A stretch of DNA of 64,000 nt from IMG/VR virus record IMGVR_UViG_3300020810_001156, positions 1-64,000 of that record; one strand, given 5' to 3'. How positions within the stretch are numbered: position 1 is the stretch's first letter; every line of letters begins with the position of its first letter. The position numbers and the translations under genes are program-made. A model generated the notes under the pieces. It had not been told where the DNA came from. It was given only the letters and a program-made list of their open reading frames with translations, and did not search any database. Positions 4,729 through 22,900 of this stretch are shown here, piece after piece.

Positions 4729-5658
4729 GTGAAAAAGGTTACATTAGAACATACTGATATTCCTATAAAATACCCATCAATTGATTATTTTATTGATAAA
4801 CTTAAAAGTGGTCAACCATATCACTTTTTAAGATTTAATCATGGTATTATTGATTCTTTTGTTGACGCGTATGATAATTATGATATTCTTAAAAAAGATA
4901 TAGAATCTAAAAAATATGATACAATATCTCAAACGATATATGATGGGTATAAGAATTCACAATGGGGATTTAATTATTACAATTTACAATCAGAGACTAC
5001 GATTGATAAAATCAAATCTTTTGTAAAGATATTTTTTGAACTCAAATTATACATACCTAAATTGGAAGTTGGTATATCAAGTGGTGTTGGGATGGGTTAT
5101 ATATTTGGAACATATGCACCCGATTATCCAATTCAGATAAACAGAAATAAAGTTATTAAAGATATTGTAACTATAACAAATGGTGATTATTTCCATTCTG
5201 GTATTTTCAGGCATTTTTCAGTTATGGGTGATATGTTTAAATTCTTTGAAGTTGCCAATCAATTAAACTATGGTGTAATTGTAATAGGACCTAATTATTT
5301 GAGATTACTAAAATCCAAATATAACATTCAAAATTTCAATATGATTTCTATACCAACCAAAGGTGCTGTTGATTTTATGGATGAATATATTTCAGATATT
5401 AAAAATGCTATTAACCAAAATCAACATAACATATTACTTACATCGGTTGGAACTATAAGTTCTTGTTATATAGCTGATAAGTTAAAAGATGAAAATATCA
5501 TTGGTATTGATATTGGTAGAAGTTTAGATTGGGATATCAGAGAACATCAAAGTAAAGAACCTACAATGCCAAAAGGTGATTGTTGGATTTCACCTGCGGG
5601 TCGTGGAGATGTTTCTCAACAATATAAAAACTATATAAATGGTTTAAGAAATGGGTAA
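4729..5658 (+). CDS. putative GT-D-fold glycosyltransferase-like protein
   Basis: FLRFNHG N-terminal motif and C-terminal IDIGRSLD resemble GT-D/DUF1792 proteins; heads a sugar-modification operon. Confidence 0.45.
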   Translation: MKKVTLEHTDIPIKYPSIDYFIDKLKSGQPYHFLRFNHGIIDSFVDAYDNYDILKKDIESKKYDTISQTIYDGYKNSQWGFNYYNLQSETTIDKIKSFVKIFFELKLYIPKLEVGISSGVGMGYIFGTYAPDYPIQINRNKVIKDIVTITNGDYFHSGIFRHFSVMGDMFKFFEVANQLNYGVIVIGPNYLRLLKSKYNIQNFNMISIPTKGAVDFMDEYISDIKNAINQNQHNILLTSVGTISSCYIADKLKDENIIGIDIGRSLDWDIREHQSKEPTMPKGDCWISPAGRGDVSQQYKNYINGLRNG

Positions 5659-13172: not shown

Positions 13173-13949
13173 ATGACTTTTTGGGAATGGAAAAATGAGG
13201 TATCTCAAGTTAAGAGTAAATTGGATATTCGAAAGGAGAGAGTAGAAGAATTCTTTAAAAATGAAGAATGGAGAAACCACCAGAAATTATCCGAATGGGC
13301 TATAAAGAATGATATAAAGTATCTTAGAAAGTACGATGCATTTGAGTATGAGTATGAATACAAATATATCATGTACTATGAATACCAAGTCCGTACAGCG
13401 TTACCACCAATAGAACCAAAAGAGAATCATTTTTGGTGTAGGTATTGTAGAGATGAAAAACCACAATCTGAAGTTAGGGGTACTTCAATATGTACTCCAT
13501 GTGCTAAACAATATCGAAGAGATAATTACGCTGAAAAAGAACGAAATTCAATGAGAGAAAGATATCATTCAGACCCAATACATAGAATTGGTTCTGTTAT
13601 AAAAGCTCATATCAATCATATCTTAAATAATAAATTTGATAAGATAAGAGATGAAACATGGGAAGAAACTGTTGGATTGAGTAAGCAGGCATTTTTAGAT
13701 TATATTTTAGAACAATGTGAACCTCATTGGAATATGGATAATTACGGAACGGAATGGGTCATTCAACATATCATTCCAAGAGATTGGGCTGAAGTAGAAT
13801 CTGATGCATATCTATTGAACTATTATAAGAACTTAATGCCGTGGGGTTTTTCTGAGAACGCAGCTCTTAAAAATAGAATCGAACCTTCTCAATTAAATGA
13901 ATGGCATTACACTAATGAGAGAATTCAACAATTGATTCAAAACCAATAG
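13173..13949 (+). CDS. HNH-type endonuclease-like protein with Cys4 zinc finger
   Basis: CRYC...CTPC, then MDNYGTEWVIQHIIP...YYKNLMP...EN, like the W.NYG.WHIDHIIP...NLQPLW..N free-standing HNH family. Confidence 0.65.
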   Translation: MTFWEWKNEVSQVKSKLDIRKERVEEFFKNEEWRNHQKLSEWAIKNDIKYLRKYDAFEYEYEYKYIMYYEYQVRTALPPIEPKENHFWCRYCRDEKPQSEVRGTSICTPCAKQYRRDNYAEKERNSMRERYHSDPIHRIGSVIKAHINHILNNKFDKIRDETWEETVGLSKQAFLDYILEQCEPHWNMDNYGTEWVIQHIIPRDWAEVESDAYLLNYYKNLMPWGFSENAALKNRIEPSQLNEWHYTNERIQQLIQNQ

Positions 13950-14297: not shown

Positions 14298-14426
14298 TCA
14301 AACCATCAACACTCTTTTACCATAAGAGTTAGGATAATGACACCCCCATATAATTAACTATACCGATATACACCTATAAGCATATATTCTAATACTTATA
14401 TACAAATAGGTTTATTTCTATCTCTA

Positions 14427-14462
14427 TCCCACTACCTACCACTTTCCCCCACTTTTCCCCAC
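14427..14462 (-). promoter_or_regulatory. four GTGG boxes at exact 10-bp period (MraZ-operator-like array)
   Basis: Minus strand reads GTGGGG-AAAA-GTGGGG-GAAA-GTGGTA-GGTA-GTGGGA. Confidence 0.55.
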
Positions 14463-14665
14463 CTAATAACATACTACTAAATAATTAGCTAAGAAAAGTA
14501 CTCTATCACCATGGTAGAGGGGCTTGTGTGTGTGTTGGTATCGCTGCAAATTTTCCTGGCCCTGATTCTGATACTATCTCCGAGCCACCTTACCCCTTTA
14601 ACCCCTAAATCCCATAAGCGCTTAGAGACAATCCCTGAGAGAGCTTGGAAATTGGGCTGTAAGAG

Positions 14666-14697
14666 CTAATATACAAAAAAGAAATGAGATATACAAG
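14666..14697 (-). promoter_or_regulatory. Bacteroidota sigma-A-type promoter, minus strand, firing into non-coding DNA
   Basis: Reverse complement: CTTG-N20-TATATTAG. Confidence 0.7.
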
Positions 14698-14707
14698 CCA
14701 TATGGCC

Positions 14708-14810
14708 TGACAATTCGTCATTGTGGATAACTTTTTTTATTAACACCAAAATGTGGATAACTTTTCAAGCGGCTGTTGATAACTTTTTAGCTTGATTTGA
14801 CAAATTGTCA
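14708..14810. promoter_or_regulatory. three co-oriented DnaA boxes flanked by two TGACAAnTTGTCA-type palindromes
   Basis: TGTGGATAA at 14722 and 14752, TGTTGATAA at 14774, each followed by CTTTT; palindromes at 14708-14720 (imperfect) and 14798-14810. Confidence 0.75.
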
Positions 14811-14819
14811 TACAAATAA

Positions 14820-14851
14820 TTTGGATATATCATTTATTTTTCGTATCTTTA
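14820..14851 (+). promoter_or_regulatory. Bacteroidota sigma-A-type promoter upstream of candidate sRNA
   Basis: TTTG 14820-14823, TATCTTTA 14844-14851. Confidence 0.65.
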
Positions 14852-14854
14852 AGG

Positions 14855-14925
14855 GTGGCTGGGTGGGAGTAGTATAGGGGAAAACAGCGAATACTGCCGC
14901 AGGAATTAGATTCACCGGCAGTCAC
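14855..14925 (+). ncRNA. candidate structured small RNA
   Basis: Own promoter; closing stem GTGGCTG/CAGTCAC plus GGTG/CACC; inner stem GTAGTAT/ATACTGC; no ORF. Confidence 0.4.
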
Positions 14926-14959
14926 GACAAAAAAAATATTAAAAAAAAGTGAGAAAAGG

Positions 14960-15006
14960 CTTGCATGATTCAAATTAATTTCGTATATTAGTACTGTAAT
15001 TGAGAG
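14960..15006 (+). promoter_or_regulatory. Bacteroidota sigma-A-type promoter with TACTGTAATTGAGAG tail
   Basis: CTTG 14960-14963, TATATTAG 14984-14991. Confidence 0.8.
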
Positions 15007-15759: not shown

Positions 15760-15785
15760 AAAAATTGAAAAAAGTTTGAAATAAA

Positions 15786-15828
15786 TTTGGATATATCATT
15801 TTTATTTCGTATATTAGTAGTGTAATTG
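15786..15828 (+). promoter_or_regulatory. Bacteroidota sigma-A-type promoter upstream of tRNA
   Basis: TTTG 15786-15789, TATATTAG 15810-15817, TAGTGTAATTG tail. Confidence 0.8.
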
Positions 15829-15871: not shown

Positions 15872-15943
15872 GCGGGAGAAGCGTTAAGAGAAACGTGCCG
15901 GGCTTCCAGCTCGGAGAAGGTGGGGCGGTTCCATCCTCCCGCT
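15872..15943 (+). tRNA. tRNA-Gly(UCC) with non-canonical D and T loops
   Basis: Acceptor GCGGGAG/CTCCCGC; D stem GCGT/ACGT; anticodon stem CCGGG/CTCGG with loop CTTCCAG; T stem GGTGG/CCATC; U73; no encoded CCA. Confidence 0.75.
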
Positions 15944-16009
15944 CAACTGATGATGAGATTAAGGATAACTCGGCTCCGAATGGGGAGGTAGCATCATCAA
16001 ACACATATT

Positions 16010-16297
16010 ATGGGAGAACAAGTAGCAAACAATAGAGAAATGCAGGAAGTGATGTATCTCCGCCAAGAAGATGGAAAGTGGTACATCCTATCCGAACCTA
16101 AATCACCTGGCCTGGTGAAGAAGGAATACTTACCTATTGGCAATCGGCTTGTATATCCTAAGAAGTGGGGAAGGAAGAAAGCTGCTGAGGTACTACTATC
16201 CGCACTTATATCAGATTCGGAAAAGGTGTGTGAAAAAGCTAATGAGAGGTTGGAAGTACTAAGAGGATTAACTGCTGAGGTTAGTGAATGGAAGTAA
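16010..16297 (+). CDS. hypothetical protein
   Basis: ORF track. Confidence 0.7.
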   Translation: MGEQVANNREMQEVMYLRQEDGKWYILSEPKSPGLVKKEYLPIGNRLVYPKKWGRKKAAEVLLSALISDSEKVCEKANERLEVLRGLTAEVSEWK

Positions 16298-16630: not shown

Positions 16631-16780
16631 ATGACAACAAAGAAAACACATAGTATATACCACAACACTCAGAACACTATAAAGTGTTACCATTGTAATT
16701 GGGAATGGGAGAGTGGGGCTTTAACCCTATACGAATGCCCCCATTGTGGAAAAGTGGCTGAAGGTATTTCCCAGCTCTAG
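16631..16780 (+). CDS. small zinc-ribbon protein (49 aa)
   Basis: KCYHCNWEW...YECPHCGK (CxxC...CxxC). Confidence 0.6.
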   Translation: MTTKKTHSIYHNTQNTIKCYHCNWEWESGALTLYECPHCGKVAEGISQL

Positions 16781-16990
16781 CGAGCGTAAGCGAGCGGAGG
16801 AGACAGGGGAGACCCCCCACCCCCCTTAGACAGGTTTCTTGTTGCTACCGGATTTGGAAACGCTCTCAAGCCGGGTCTGGTCCGTTTTCGCCTCGAGCCC
16901 GGTTTTTTCCGGTATAGAAAAAATACCCTTTGATACCCCTTCGGTGTATCCTAAGAGGATATCAAACTCGGATTTGTGAAGGGAGCCATT
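16779..16990. other. GC-rich non-coding structured island (candidate packaging/terminus or origin site)
   Basis: AGCGAGCG x2, AGACAGG x2, GGGGAGACCCCCCACCCCCC, CCGGG/CCCGG stem, UUCG hairpin; contrasts with AT-rich surroundings. Confidence 0.45.
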
Positions 16991-20179: not shown

Positions 20180-22900
20180 TTAGAATCTATAAGTTAAACT
20201 TGCGTTCCAAGTTCTACCAAATCCGAACCATACTGAGTTTCTAACATCAACACCATTCCATGTAGTTGAACTAGCATCTGCATGAATGTTAGAGTTAGAT
20301 TCTGCAATATAAACAGCATCGAATAAGTTGTTGATATTAGCTCTCGCAGTAAATTTACCAAACTTACCAGTCAATCCTAAATCAACTAAACCATACGATG
20401 GTAATTTCATCGCACCTAAGTTATCAGGTTGTGTAAACTCCGAATCAGTAATAGAGTAGTCAGCGTATAATCCATCTACAAATCTATAATCTACATCAAC
20501 ATTAAATCTTTTACCTAACTTCTGGTCTACTCCTAAAACAGCTACGAATTGTGCAGCATCACCAACTTTAGCATCTTTAAGGTAAAGAGTACCTGTTCCG
20601 ATTGATTGTTGGTTATCATCAAATAATTCTGCTTCGAAATCTTTAGTATATCTCCAATCACCGATTGATAACATACCTCTGAATCTCGTTGCGTTTGATA
20701 ATTGATACTTACCTTCAAATTCGATACCATTATGTACTACATCGATATCTCTGAATTGTGCAAATCCATCTACACCTTGTTGGTTAGATAAACTTCTACT
20801 AACAAATCTATTACCCCAAGTTGTTGTGTAAGCGTTAATGTTAAACGATACATCTGAACCAATAAAACCATAACCCAATTCAAATGAACGAATTTCTTCG
20901 TTTTGTAAATCTGGATTAATTTCATTAGCAAAGTTAGGGAATACTGCATCAAACTGAGGTTGTCTTGAAATTACACCTGCGTTAAAGAACACATTTGATT
21001 TCTCATCGATATTGTAGTTAGCACCACCCTTTACATATCCACCACCTTGGTTTTGAACATCTGATTCTGGGTTACCTGGTTGGTCAAAATAATCGATTCT
21101 TTGGAATGCTTGGTTAGATAAACCTGCTTGTACTACTGCAGTTAATTTATCTCCCTGATATTCTACTAAACCATTAAGACCTTGCCATCCAACTTTACCA
21201 ACATTGTAGTAATCAATCTTCGGACCGTTTAGACCTGTATTCTGAAAAGGATTTGCTTCAACTAAAGTATTGATGATTTGACCGTTAGAGTTTTTGTTAC
21301 CCGTTGAGTAATAACCATCTAATCCCATTAAATCATTAAGAACTCTATAATGATAACCAGTATAGCTTCTTAAATCAACACCAATAGATGTTTTGAATTT
21401 ACCAAATTGTCCTTCTAAGTTTGAGATACCACCAACCCAGTTGTGTGAGTTCATAGATGCTCTTCTTACCAATACTGTTCTATTTACATTAGAATCTCTG
21501 AATCCATTCGAACCAATAAGTTGTCCTTGGAATGCTGAGATATCACCTGTATATCCTTCAGTAGTTGATTGGTTAGCTGCAACGATTGCATCGAAATCGA
21601 TGAATCCATTTGCATCTCTTGAACCTCTACCATTTTCTAAGTAGTGTTCTGTAAGGTCTTTTCTGAAAGGTAAGATATCAGTTGCAGCTGCACGATAGTT
21701 GTTACCACGAGGACCTGTACCACCACCTCTACCAGCAGAACCATATAATGATGTTGCTAATTTAAGGTTATCTGAAATGTTCCAATCCCAGTTGAAAGTT
21801 GCTAATGGTTTGTTGTAGAAGTTTCTTCTTAAAGAATACTCTTCTCCATTTAGTGTACCACCATTAGAATTCCATCTCTGGTCAATTCCTTCTTCACCAA
21901 AGTTTTGGTAATCTCTAATAGATACCCAAACATCTCTTTGATGGTGCCATTGACCTGCACCTAAGAATGAAAAGTTCAATTCATGGTCTGAACCTTCCGG
22001 TGCGTAACCAACTGCAGCGAAGTAAGTCCATCCTTCACCTGAAGTGTTGTAAACATATCCGTTACCAGCCCACTTAGATAATAAGAAAGATGATGCCCAT
22101 CCTTTATCATTCTTACCTGTGTTGTAAGAAACTCCTGTTTTGGTGTATCCATCGTTACCAACCATTTGAATTACTTTACCACCTTCAGTTTTCTGTGCGG
22201 CTTTAGTAAAAATGGAAACAGTTCCCCCAACTGAAGGAACTGCCAACTTAGATGCACCTAAACCTCTTTGGATTTGGATACCTGATGCTACATCGGTTAA
22301 ACCTTGCCAGTTACTCCAATATACCCATCCGTTCTCCATATCGTTAACGGGTTGTCCGTTAATAAGGAAAGATGTATTTCTTTGGTCAAATCCTCTAAGA
22401 GAGATTCTTGAATCACCATAACCACCACCTTGTTTAGTAGCATAAACCCCTGGAGTTTTATTCATAATTTCAGGGAATTCTTGGTTACCAACCTTTAGAG
22501 AAATCTCAGCTGGTGATATCGATGATACCGCTACTGGAGTTTCTCTTACTTTTGCTACATCAATTACCCCTGATGTAACCACCACTTCAGCTAACTGATT
22601 TAATGCAGTTGGTAAATTTACAATCATATCGTTCACAGCAACAACCTCAGTTGTTTGGAAACCAATAAAAGAAATTACTAAAGTGTTACCAGCGGATGCC
22701 CCAGAAATAGAAAAGAGACCATCAAAATCGGTTGTTGTACCATTTTGGGTCCCTTTGATTACTACCGTTGCGCCTGGTAGGGGTTCATTCGTTTCTGCAT
22801 CTACCACTGTTCCAGTGATTTGTGCGAAACCGGTCATTGAGGTGAAAACCATCAATAACCCAATCAAAAATTGCTTCATAATTGCTTGATTTTTGTTCAT
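20180..22900 (-). CDS. TonB-dependent outer-membrane receptor
   Basis: Signal peptide (FAQ), CarboxypepD-like domain (ITGTVVD..EPLPGATV), plug (SLRGF...INGQP), barrel ending ...SLTYRF. Confidence 0.9.
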   Translation of the reverse strand: MNKNQAIMKQFLIGLLMVFTSMTGFAQITGTVVDAETNEPLPGATVVIKGTQNGTTTDFDGLFSISGASAGNTLVISFIGFQTTEVVAVNDMIVNLPTALNQLAEVVVTSGVIDVAKVRETPVAVSSISPAEISLKVGNQEFPEIMNKTPGVYATKQGGGYGDSRISLRGFDQRNTSFLINGQPVNDMENGWVYWSNWQGLTDVASGIQIQRGLGASKLAVPSVGGTVSIFTKAAQKTEGGKVIQMVGNDGYTKTGVSYNTGKNDKGWASSFLLSKWAGNGYVYNTSGEGWTYFAAVGYAPEGSDHELNFSFLGAGQWHHQRDVWVSIRDYQNFGEEGIDQRWNSNGGTLNGEEYSLRRNFYNKPLATFNWDWNISDNLKLATSLYGSAGRGGGTGPRGNNYRAAATDILPFRKDLTEHYLENGRGSRDANGFIDFDAIVAANQSTTEGYTGDISAFQGQLIGSNGFRDSNVNRTVLVRRASMNSHNWVGGISNLEGQFGKFKTSIGVDLRSYTGYHYRVLNDLMGLDGYYSTGNKNSNGQIINTLVEANPFQNTGLNGPKIDYYNVGKVGWQGLNGLVEYQGDKLTAVVQAGLSNQAFQRIDYFDQPGNPESDVQNQGGGYVKGGANYNIDEKSNVFFNAGVISRQPQFDAVFPNFANEINPDLQNEEIRSFELGYGFIGSDVSFNINAYTTTWGNRFVSRSLSNQQGVDGFAQFRDIDVVHNGIEFEGKYQLSNATRFRGMLSIGDWRYTKDFEAELFDDNQQSIGTGTLYLKDAKVGDAAQFVAVLGVDQKLGKRFNVDVDYRFVDGLYADYSITDSEFTQPDNLGAMKLPSYGLVDLGLTGKFGKFTARANINNLFDAVYIAESNSNIHADASSTTWNGVDVRNSVWFGFGRTWNASLTYRF

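Follow-up and report, generated by a model that had tools for sequence, protein, structure and literature searches.

A large marine phage was found to carry a conserved derivative of tRNA-Gly(UCC) which, judged from its sequence, should still be chargeable with glycine but appears unfit for the ribosome. The gene lies in the first 64,000 nucleotides (hereafter the window) of a 252,603-bp IMG/VR virus record, IMGVR_UViG_3300020810_001156, rated complete. Most of the near-complete phages carrying this element (eight of nine) also encode pairs of Mom-family enzymes; Mom uses glycyl-tRNA to modify DNA. Our preferred reading, to which we assign a probability of about 0.45, is that the element is a non-proteinogenic glycyl carrier feeding Mom, and may thus be a private glycine donor for the protection of phage DNA. 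Its expression, charging and use by Mom are all inferred.

To verify the first-pass annotation of this locus, the sequence of the 250-nt gap between a 50-aa and a 95-aa ORF was re-examined. Every sequence feature listed in that annotation was present, and its observation is confirmed: the 72-nt cloverleaf (layout 7 / 2 / D arm / 1 / 5-7-5 / 4 / 5-7-5 / 7 / 1) has an acceptor stem GCGGGAG/CUCCCGC followed by U73, A8 and U14, an 8-nt D-loop without GG, an anticodon arm CCGGG-CUUCCAG-CUCGG, a 4-nt variable region, and a T arm GGUGG-GGCGGUU-CCAUC with U51-A63. The cloverleaf is the minimum-free-energy fold (-32.8 kcal/mol, z -2.36, 4 of 200 shuffles as good). ARAGORN at default settings found no tRNA in either the window or the whole genome, and called the element only at the 80% threshold, among 147 mostly spurious calls. 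Rfam likewise reported nothing in ordinary scans, as its speed filters drop the element in any longer input; when only a 92-nt slice was supplied, the tRNA model RF00005 scored it at 34.4 bits over model positions 1-71, above the 29-bit gathering cut-off. A canonical neighbour in a related phage scored 68 bits. A weak match to RAGATH-21 (16 bits against a 70-bit cut-off) was dismissed. The features of the locus, and others encountered in the same genome, are listed in Table 1.

Table 1. Coordinates of the tRNA-like gene, its parts, and other features of the window and the genome.
Position	Strand	Feature	Observations
15783..15819	+	Promoter motif (TTTGG, about 20 nt, TTTCGTATATTAGTA) upstream of the tRNA-like gene	Conserved in relative L004; a sigma-70 scan finds TGGATA-16-TATATT
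15872..15943	+	tRNA-Gly(UCC)-derived gene, 72 nt	No encoded CCA (trailer CAA); covariance model R1 scores 106 bits, single copy in the genome
15872..15878	+	Acceptor stem, 5' strand	Pairs with 15936-15942; G1 C2 G3 invariant, position 4 a purine, positions 5-7 covary
15879..15897	+	A8, R9, D arm and R26	Stem 15881-84 / 15893-96; loop UAAGAGAA with R15, G19, A21 but no G18G19; pairs 10-25, 11-24 and 12-23 covary; loop invariant apart from R15 and R17
15898..15914	+	Anticodon arm	5-bp stem plus the C32-G38 pair, enclosing the 5-nt loop UUCCA (C35, C36, A37 invariant); all six pairs show two-sided changes
15915..15918	+	4-nt variable region AGAA	Last base co-varies with R15: 15/48 combinations A/A, G/U and A/U, never G/A
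15919..15935	+	T arm, stem GGUGG/CCAUC and loop GGCGGUU	G54 G55 C56 R57 G58 invariant in the family
15936..15943	+	Acceptor stem 3' strand and discriminator U73	U73 invariant in 80 of 80
15945..16002	+	Optional 58-nt hairpin spacer before the next ORF	One metatranscriptome contig lacks it, joining 15944 to 16003; in two-copy relatives the same hairpin lies between the copies
16010..16297	+	Conserved 95-aa ORF following the element in this phage lineage	245 or more homologues at 72-92% identity; a neighbour, not shown to be a partner
13173-13949		258-aa ORF	Matches the phage endonuclease VII family (phrog_1035, E 2e-8)
14380-14960		Second ORF-free, partly GC-rich stretch, conserved in relatives	Contains a copy of the promoter motif (14817) followed by a G-rich segment and a hairpin
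16778-16965		ORF-free stretch of 49-57% GC in a genome of about 33% GC	76-94% nucleotide identity in more than 25 related loci; no thermodynamic fold signal (z -0.16), no Rfam hit
20180-22900	-	906-aa TonB-dependent receptor	CarboxypepD_reg, Plug and beta-barrel domains; a Bacteroidota-style outer-membrane transporter carried by a virus
1423, 2204, 9358, 14817, 15783, 17007, 23073, 46593		Window copies, given as examples, of the recurrent promoter-like motif (TTTGG, about 20 nt, TTTCGTATATTWGTA)	At least 14 copies in the genome, 13 of them on the + strand and mostly before ORFs
genome 180366-181133 and 181310-182116 (outside the window)		Two tandem Mom-family GNAT genes	PF25680, E 1e-43 and 2e-45; a copy of the promoter motif precedes the second, at genome position 181112
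genome 249111-251228 (outside the window)		705-aa CCA-adding enzyme	HD domain and a long basic tail

The annotation's claim that the gene has its own promoter also held. The Bacteroidota promoter consensus is -33 TTTG / -7 TAnnTTTG, and we infer that the upstream motif is of this type; the same motif precedes the second Mom gene, but it appears to drive many genes of the phage. The promoter type, the phage-encoded TonB-dependent receptor, and the finding that the nearest cultured homologue of the phage Mom is from a Polaribacter phage all suggest that the host is probably a member of the Bacteroidota.

To examine whether the element is conserved, as the annotation had proposed to check through homologue covariation, a covariance model (R1) was built from three copies, one relative with 72% identity in the 95-aa protein having been seen to possess two copies upstream of the same ORF. 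R1 was then applied to 80 related metagenome loci which had been retrieved through the neighbouring protein, so that retrieval did not depend on the RNA. It detected 77 copies (52 distinct; alignment A4), in which all 22 stem pairs plus 32-38 are standard pairs in 100% of cells, against 46-50% when the partner is slid, and 14 pairs change on both sides. Positions 5-7, the D stem, the whole anticodon stem and T-stem pairs 50-64, 52-62 and 53-61 covary, whereas 49-65 and 51-63 never vary. Frequent G-U pairs indicate that selection acts on the + strand RNA. A decaying tRNA pseudogene or a chance cloverleaf, for which the only argument is the silence of ARAGORN and of default Rfam scans, is effectively excluded by these data: compensatory changes are found in every helix, the novel loops are invariant where decay would be random, and the gene has a promoter motif.

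The distribution of the family was tested with a loop-based pattern, which found it in 35 IMG/VR contigs and in none of 185,579 prokaryote genomes; a blastn search of 50,697 GenBank phage records matched only the canonical tRNAs, never the element. In many of these contigs the element lies inside canonical tRNA arrays on the same strand, often as two tandem copies with a 77-nt period, sometimes 7 nt from tRNA-Gly(GCC). Among all canonical tRNAs in 33 such loci, R1 weakly hit only tRNA-Gly (25-46 bits). One gene, at positions 5439-5523 of locus L108, shares the stems of the element but has a canonical GG D-loop and a UUCAAAU T-loop. The acceptor stem, the T stem and the trailer (U73, then C, with no encoded CCA) match those of canonical phage tRNA-Gly(UCC). 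Taken together, these results show that the element is a descendant of tRNA-Gly(UCC).

The array context also bears on a further reading, that the element is a cis-acting processing or regulatory signal for the downstream 95-aa ORF, either as RNase P/Z punctuation creating a short leader or as an operator bound by a tRNA-binding protein. In this lineage the element ends 8-10 nt before the ATG in nearly all relatives, sometimes as two copies. However, in the array phages the same element occurs without that ORF, the window copy is separated from the ATG by the optional 58-nt hairpin (the position of which between tandem copies in relatives suggests that this lineage may have lost its second copy), and punctuation alone would not conserve C35, C36, U73 and both loops. 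We therefore dropped this idea as improbable. The 95-aa protein was also tested as a partner, together with an unrelated family of roughly 85-95-aa proteins (invariant W, HH, W) which adjoins the element in 23 of 33 tRNA-array loci (among them L096:3785-4039 and L094:6213-6470), its stop codon being in several cases the TAA inside the D-loop of the first copy. Neither has a Pfam or PHROG hit, the two are unrelated to each other (hhalign probability 0.2%), and confident AlphaFold models, that of the second family being a predicted four-helix bundle, found no fold match in the PDB.

To identify the positions under constraint, 80 distinct full-length copies from 92 loci (A4 plus a second alignment, A5) were compared. 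G1, C2, G3, U73, C35, C36, A37 and A8 are invariant, and C70, G71 and C72 are constant in every 3' strand tallied; position 4 is G (73) or A (7), and position 69 is C (74) or U (6). These include the determinants of bacterial GlyRS, namely G1-C72, C2-G71, C35, C36, U73 and purine-4 with pyrimidine-69, and that enzyme is reported to be insensitive to loop sequences and to U54/U55 changes (PMC10464925). Conversely, the signatures needed for decoding are replaced: the family has A8/U14, A18, G54, G55 and G58, the D-loop is RAGAGA and the T-loop GGCRGYW. Pair 32-38 is C-G in 45 and U-A in 7 of the 52 distinct copies of A4, and Watson-Crick without exception in the family. Position 33 is A in 28 of the 80 copies, the loop variants being UUCCA, AUCCA and UACCA, with one AACCA. 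The family therefore looks selected to stay chargeable with glycine while losing U33, an open anticodon loop, G18, T54, psi55 and A58.

A working but unorthodox decoding tRNA-Gly, for instance one hardened against an anticodon nuclease or a modification enzyme, or a frameshift-promoting variant used at GGN codons, is unlikely in view of these replacements and of the canonical tRNA-Gly(UCC or GCC) which carrier phages often also encode. In its favor are the location in tRNA arrays, the retention of U33 in about two thirds of copies (anticodons UCC or ACC), and the resemblance of relatives with 6-nt loops to classical tRNA-Gly frameshift suppressors.

The interpretation given in the first-pass annotation, a tRNA-Gly that keeps its aminoacylation identity but lacks the ribosomal elbow and serves as a glycine donor for a non-ribosomal ligase or as a decoy, is partly supported. 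Its core idea of a glycine-identity tRNA withdrawn from translation agrees with the sequence conservation, and a non-ribosomal donor role is the best-supported reading. The description of the elbow as lacking is, however, too strong: G19, C56, R57 and G53-C61 are invariant, U8-A14 is swapped to A8-U14 rather than lost, positions 15 and 48 co-vary, and both loops are frozen in a new consensus, so that the elbow is probably remodelled, not absent. The U51-A63 pair which it had listed among the aberrant features is, like the other two of the first three T-stem pairs (49-65 and 50-64), identical to that of a canonical phage tRNA-Gly(UCC) (locus L118); no antideterminant or other staphylococcal-type sign of EF-Tu evasion is visible in this sequence comparison, and EF-Tu may still bind the RNA. 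The strongest anti-decoding feature, the closed 32-38 pair together with A33 in a third of copies, had been missed. Finally, the Fem- and MprF-like ligases proposed as partners are absent: searches of the 252.6-kb genome for FemAB, Acetyltransf_6 and the MprF C-domain (PF02388, PF13480 and PF09924) returned nothing. No class II aaRS core and no phage GlyRS was found either.

The search for an alternative partner led to Mom. This GNAT of phage Mu transfers glycine from Gly-tRNAGly to N6 of adenine in dsDNA, the product rearranging to N6-carbamoylmethyl-adenine, and rejects Gly-tRNAAla (PMC13219725). Using Mu Mom from its GenBank record as query, two full-length tandem homologues were found in the genome of the window, beside ribonucleotide reductase and thioredoxin genes; both keep the catalytic residues R111 and S124 of Mu Mom.

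To test whether Mom and the element co-occur, 30 element-bearing IMG/VR records were searched. Of the seven rated at least 90% complete, six have Mom, always as a tandem pair, as do a record rated 87% and the genome of the window. The exception (record G020, 168 kb) carries element copies identical to those of a 270-kb Mom-positive record and also lacks the Mom flanks, so it is probably a fragment. In the reverse direction, of 18 large records retrieved with the phage Mom, all five rated at least 90% complete have R1 hits. These are aberrant tRNA-Gly(UCC) genes with a C32-G38 closure, G33 or A33, 6-nt loops and, in two cases, non-UUC T-loops; several are not called by ARAGORN, and they stand beside canonical tRNA-Gly. 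Mom-positive records L219-L224 carry up to three tRNA-Gly(UCC)-type genes, ranging from canonical through copies with a closed or 6-nt anticodon loop to copies with non-UUC T-loops, in what looks like a graded series of withdrawal from decoding. As controls, 16 large tRNA-array phage records were picked through a shared tRNA-Ser(UGA); none has Mom over the cut-off or the element, and their R1 hits are ordinary tRNA-Gly(UCC). On near-complete records the comparison is 8/9 against 0/4 (Fisher p = 0.007), although this test overstates independence: the carriers are related phages which share small ORFs, several are near-identical, and both Mom and the element could simply be clade traits. Mom and the element are never adjacent, lying 27-107 kb apart. 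Four cultured Mom-encoding viruses (PX29, phiSA_BS1, P12002L and HGTV-1) have no match to the element, and Mu uses all host isoacceptors, so that the RNA can only be an accessory for Mom and not a requirement.

One possible explanation for these findings is that the locus encodes a non-proteinogenic glycine tRNA. The analysis itself establishes a structure-constrained descendant of tRNA-Gly(UCC), found only in large phages and preceded by a recurrent phage promoter motif, which keeps every known bacterial GlyRS determinant, has replaced the anticodon-loop and elbow signatures that decoding needs, and belongs to phages that also carry Mom-family enzymes (with the exception noted above); the steps that follow are inferred. 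In this view, transcription would start from the promoter at 15783-15819, and the transcript would be trimmed like a tRNA and receive CCA, possibly from the phage's own CCA-adding enzyme. That enzyme, encoded in a genome with no canonical tRNA gene, is however limited to this lineage (records G000 and G017, the latter being the closest large relative) and absent from 14 other records, and thus is not a general companion of the element. Host GlyRS would then charge the RNA, and the closed anticodon loop, the frequent loss of U33 and the remodelled D/T loops would prevent the ribosome from consuming this glycine. The reserved pool would be used by the two Mom-family GNATs to glycylate N6 of adenine in phage DNA, the product rearranging to N6-carbamoylmethyl-adenine and protecting against restriction, and the new D/T-loop consensus may be a private handle for the transferase. 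Mom is thought to read mainly the 3' end, which leaves the remodelled elbow unexplained. Metatranscriptome contigs cover the locus only at background depth, with no ends and no enrichment.

An additional scenario is that the RNA is a decoy or spare target for host defences that attack tRNA-Gly, such as toxSAS enzymes that pyrophosphorylate the CCA end after reading the acceptor stem, GNAT toxins that acetylate Gly-tRNAGly, or anticodon nucleases; the RNA would soak up or replace the attacked species without entering translation. FaRel2 selects tRNAGly and tRNAThr through acceptor pairs 1, 2, 4 and 5, and its authors note that phages use tRNA isoacceptors against tRNA-targeting defences (10.1101/2024.07.05.602228). 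The element is phage-specific and keeps the tRNA-Gly acceptor stem and U73. The decoy ideas, also raised in the first-pass annotation, remain possible but are less favored: a stoichiometric decoy is a poor answer to a turnover enzyme, invariance of C35, C36 and A37 is not needed for an acceptor-end decoy, and a replacement tRNA should keep U33, an open loop and the elbow in order to decode. Neither this scenario nor the decoding or cis-signal readings explain both the conservation of the anticodon determinants and the link with Mom.

In its furthest form, which we regard as tentative, the donor hypothesis implies that large aquatic phages run a translation-insulated glycine supply line, in which a remodelled tRNA-Gly and duplicated Mom enzymes recognizing its rebuilt elbow form a natural orthogonal tRNA-transferase pair dedicated to hypermodifying viral DNA. 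This would be the first non-proteinogenic tRNA outside staphylococci, the first in a virus and the first tied to DNA chemistry; no description of a phage-encoded non-proteinogenic tRNA-Gly, or of a link of such a tRNA to Mom, was found in the searchable literature. A conserved viral family would show that the strategy is more general and that viruses evolve it too. It offers a possible answer to a question left open by the Mom work, namely how a phage draws millions of glycyl groups without starving translation. A tRNA body that GlyRS charges but the ribosome ignores, possibly with a matching transferase, would also be a ready-made orthogonal pair for engineering. As these genes escape ARAGORN and filtered Rfam scans, phage tRNA repertoires are under-annotated.

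The closest precedent is the set of staphylococcal non-proteogenic tRNAGly (NP1-NP3 of S. aureus; Ia/Ib of S. epidermidis) which feed FmhB/FemA/FemB, and which were stated to be so far the only known case (PMC7826273). Both are extra tRNA-Gly(UCC) paralogues with D- and T-loops lacking GG and T-psi-C and an anticodon stem drawn with six pairs and a 5-nt loop; both also share retained GlyRS recognition and poor fitness for the ribosome, which for the present element are inferred from sequence. In staphylococci the altered D/T regions lower use by the translation machinery and raise use by FmhB, and here they could likewise serve as transferase determinants. The present element differs in being viral, in the absence of a Fem-family enzyme, in loops rebuilt to a different, strictly conserved consensus with the A8-U14 swap, in a variable position 33, in unchanged T-stem pairs of the kind that tune EF-Tu binding, and in a candidate acceptor that is DNA and not peptidoglycan. 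With phage Mu the genome shares Mom-family GNATs bearing the catalytic Arg and Ser, a chemistry that needs Gly on a tRNAGly body; Mu, however, has one Mom and no tRNA, whereas these phages have tandem Mom pairs plus their own aberrant tRNA-Gly genes, the use of which by Mom is inferred. Phage tRNAs or tRNA mimics used against tRNA-targeting defences resemble the element as phage-borne extra tRNAs of one specificity, tRNAGly being a known toxSAS target, but such rescue tRNAs must decode, and this family has lost the decoding signatures. Canonical phage-encoded tRNA-Gly(UCC) or (GCC) share its acceptor stem type (GCGG.../...CCGC-U), T stem, trailer and array context, but keep U8, A14, G18G19, U33, an unpaired 32-38 and the UUCGA T-loop.
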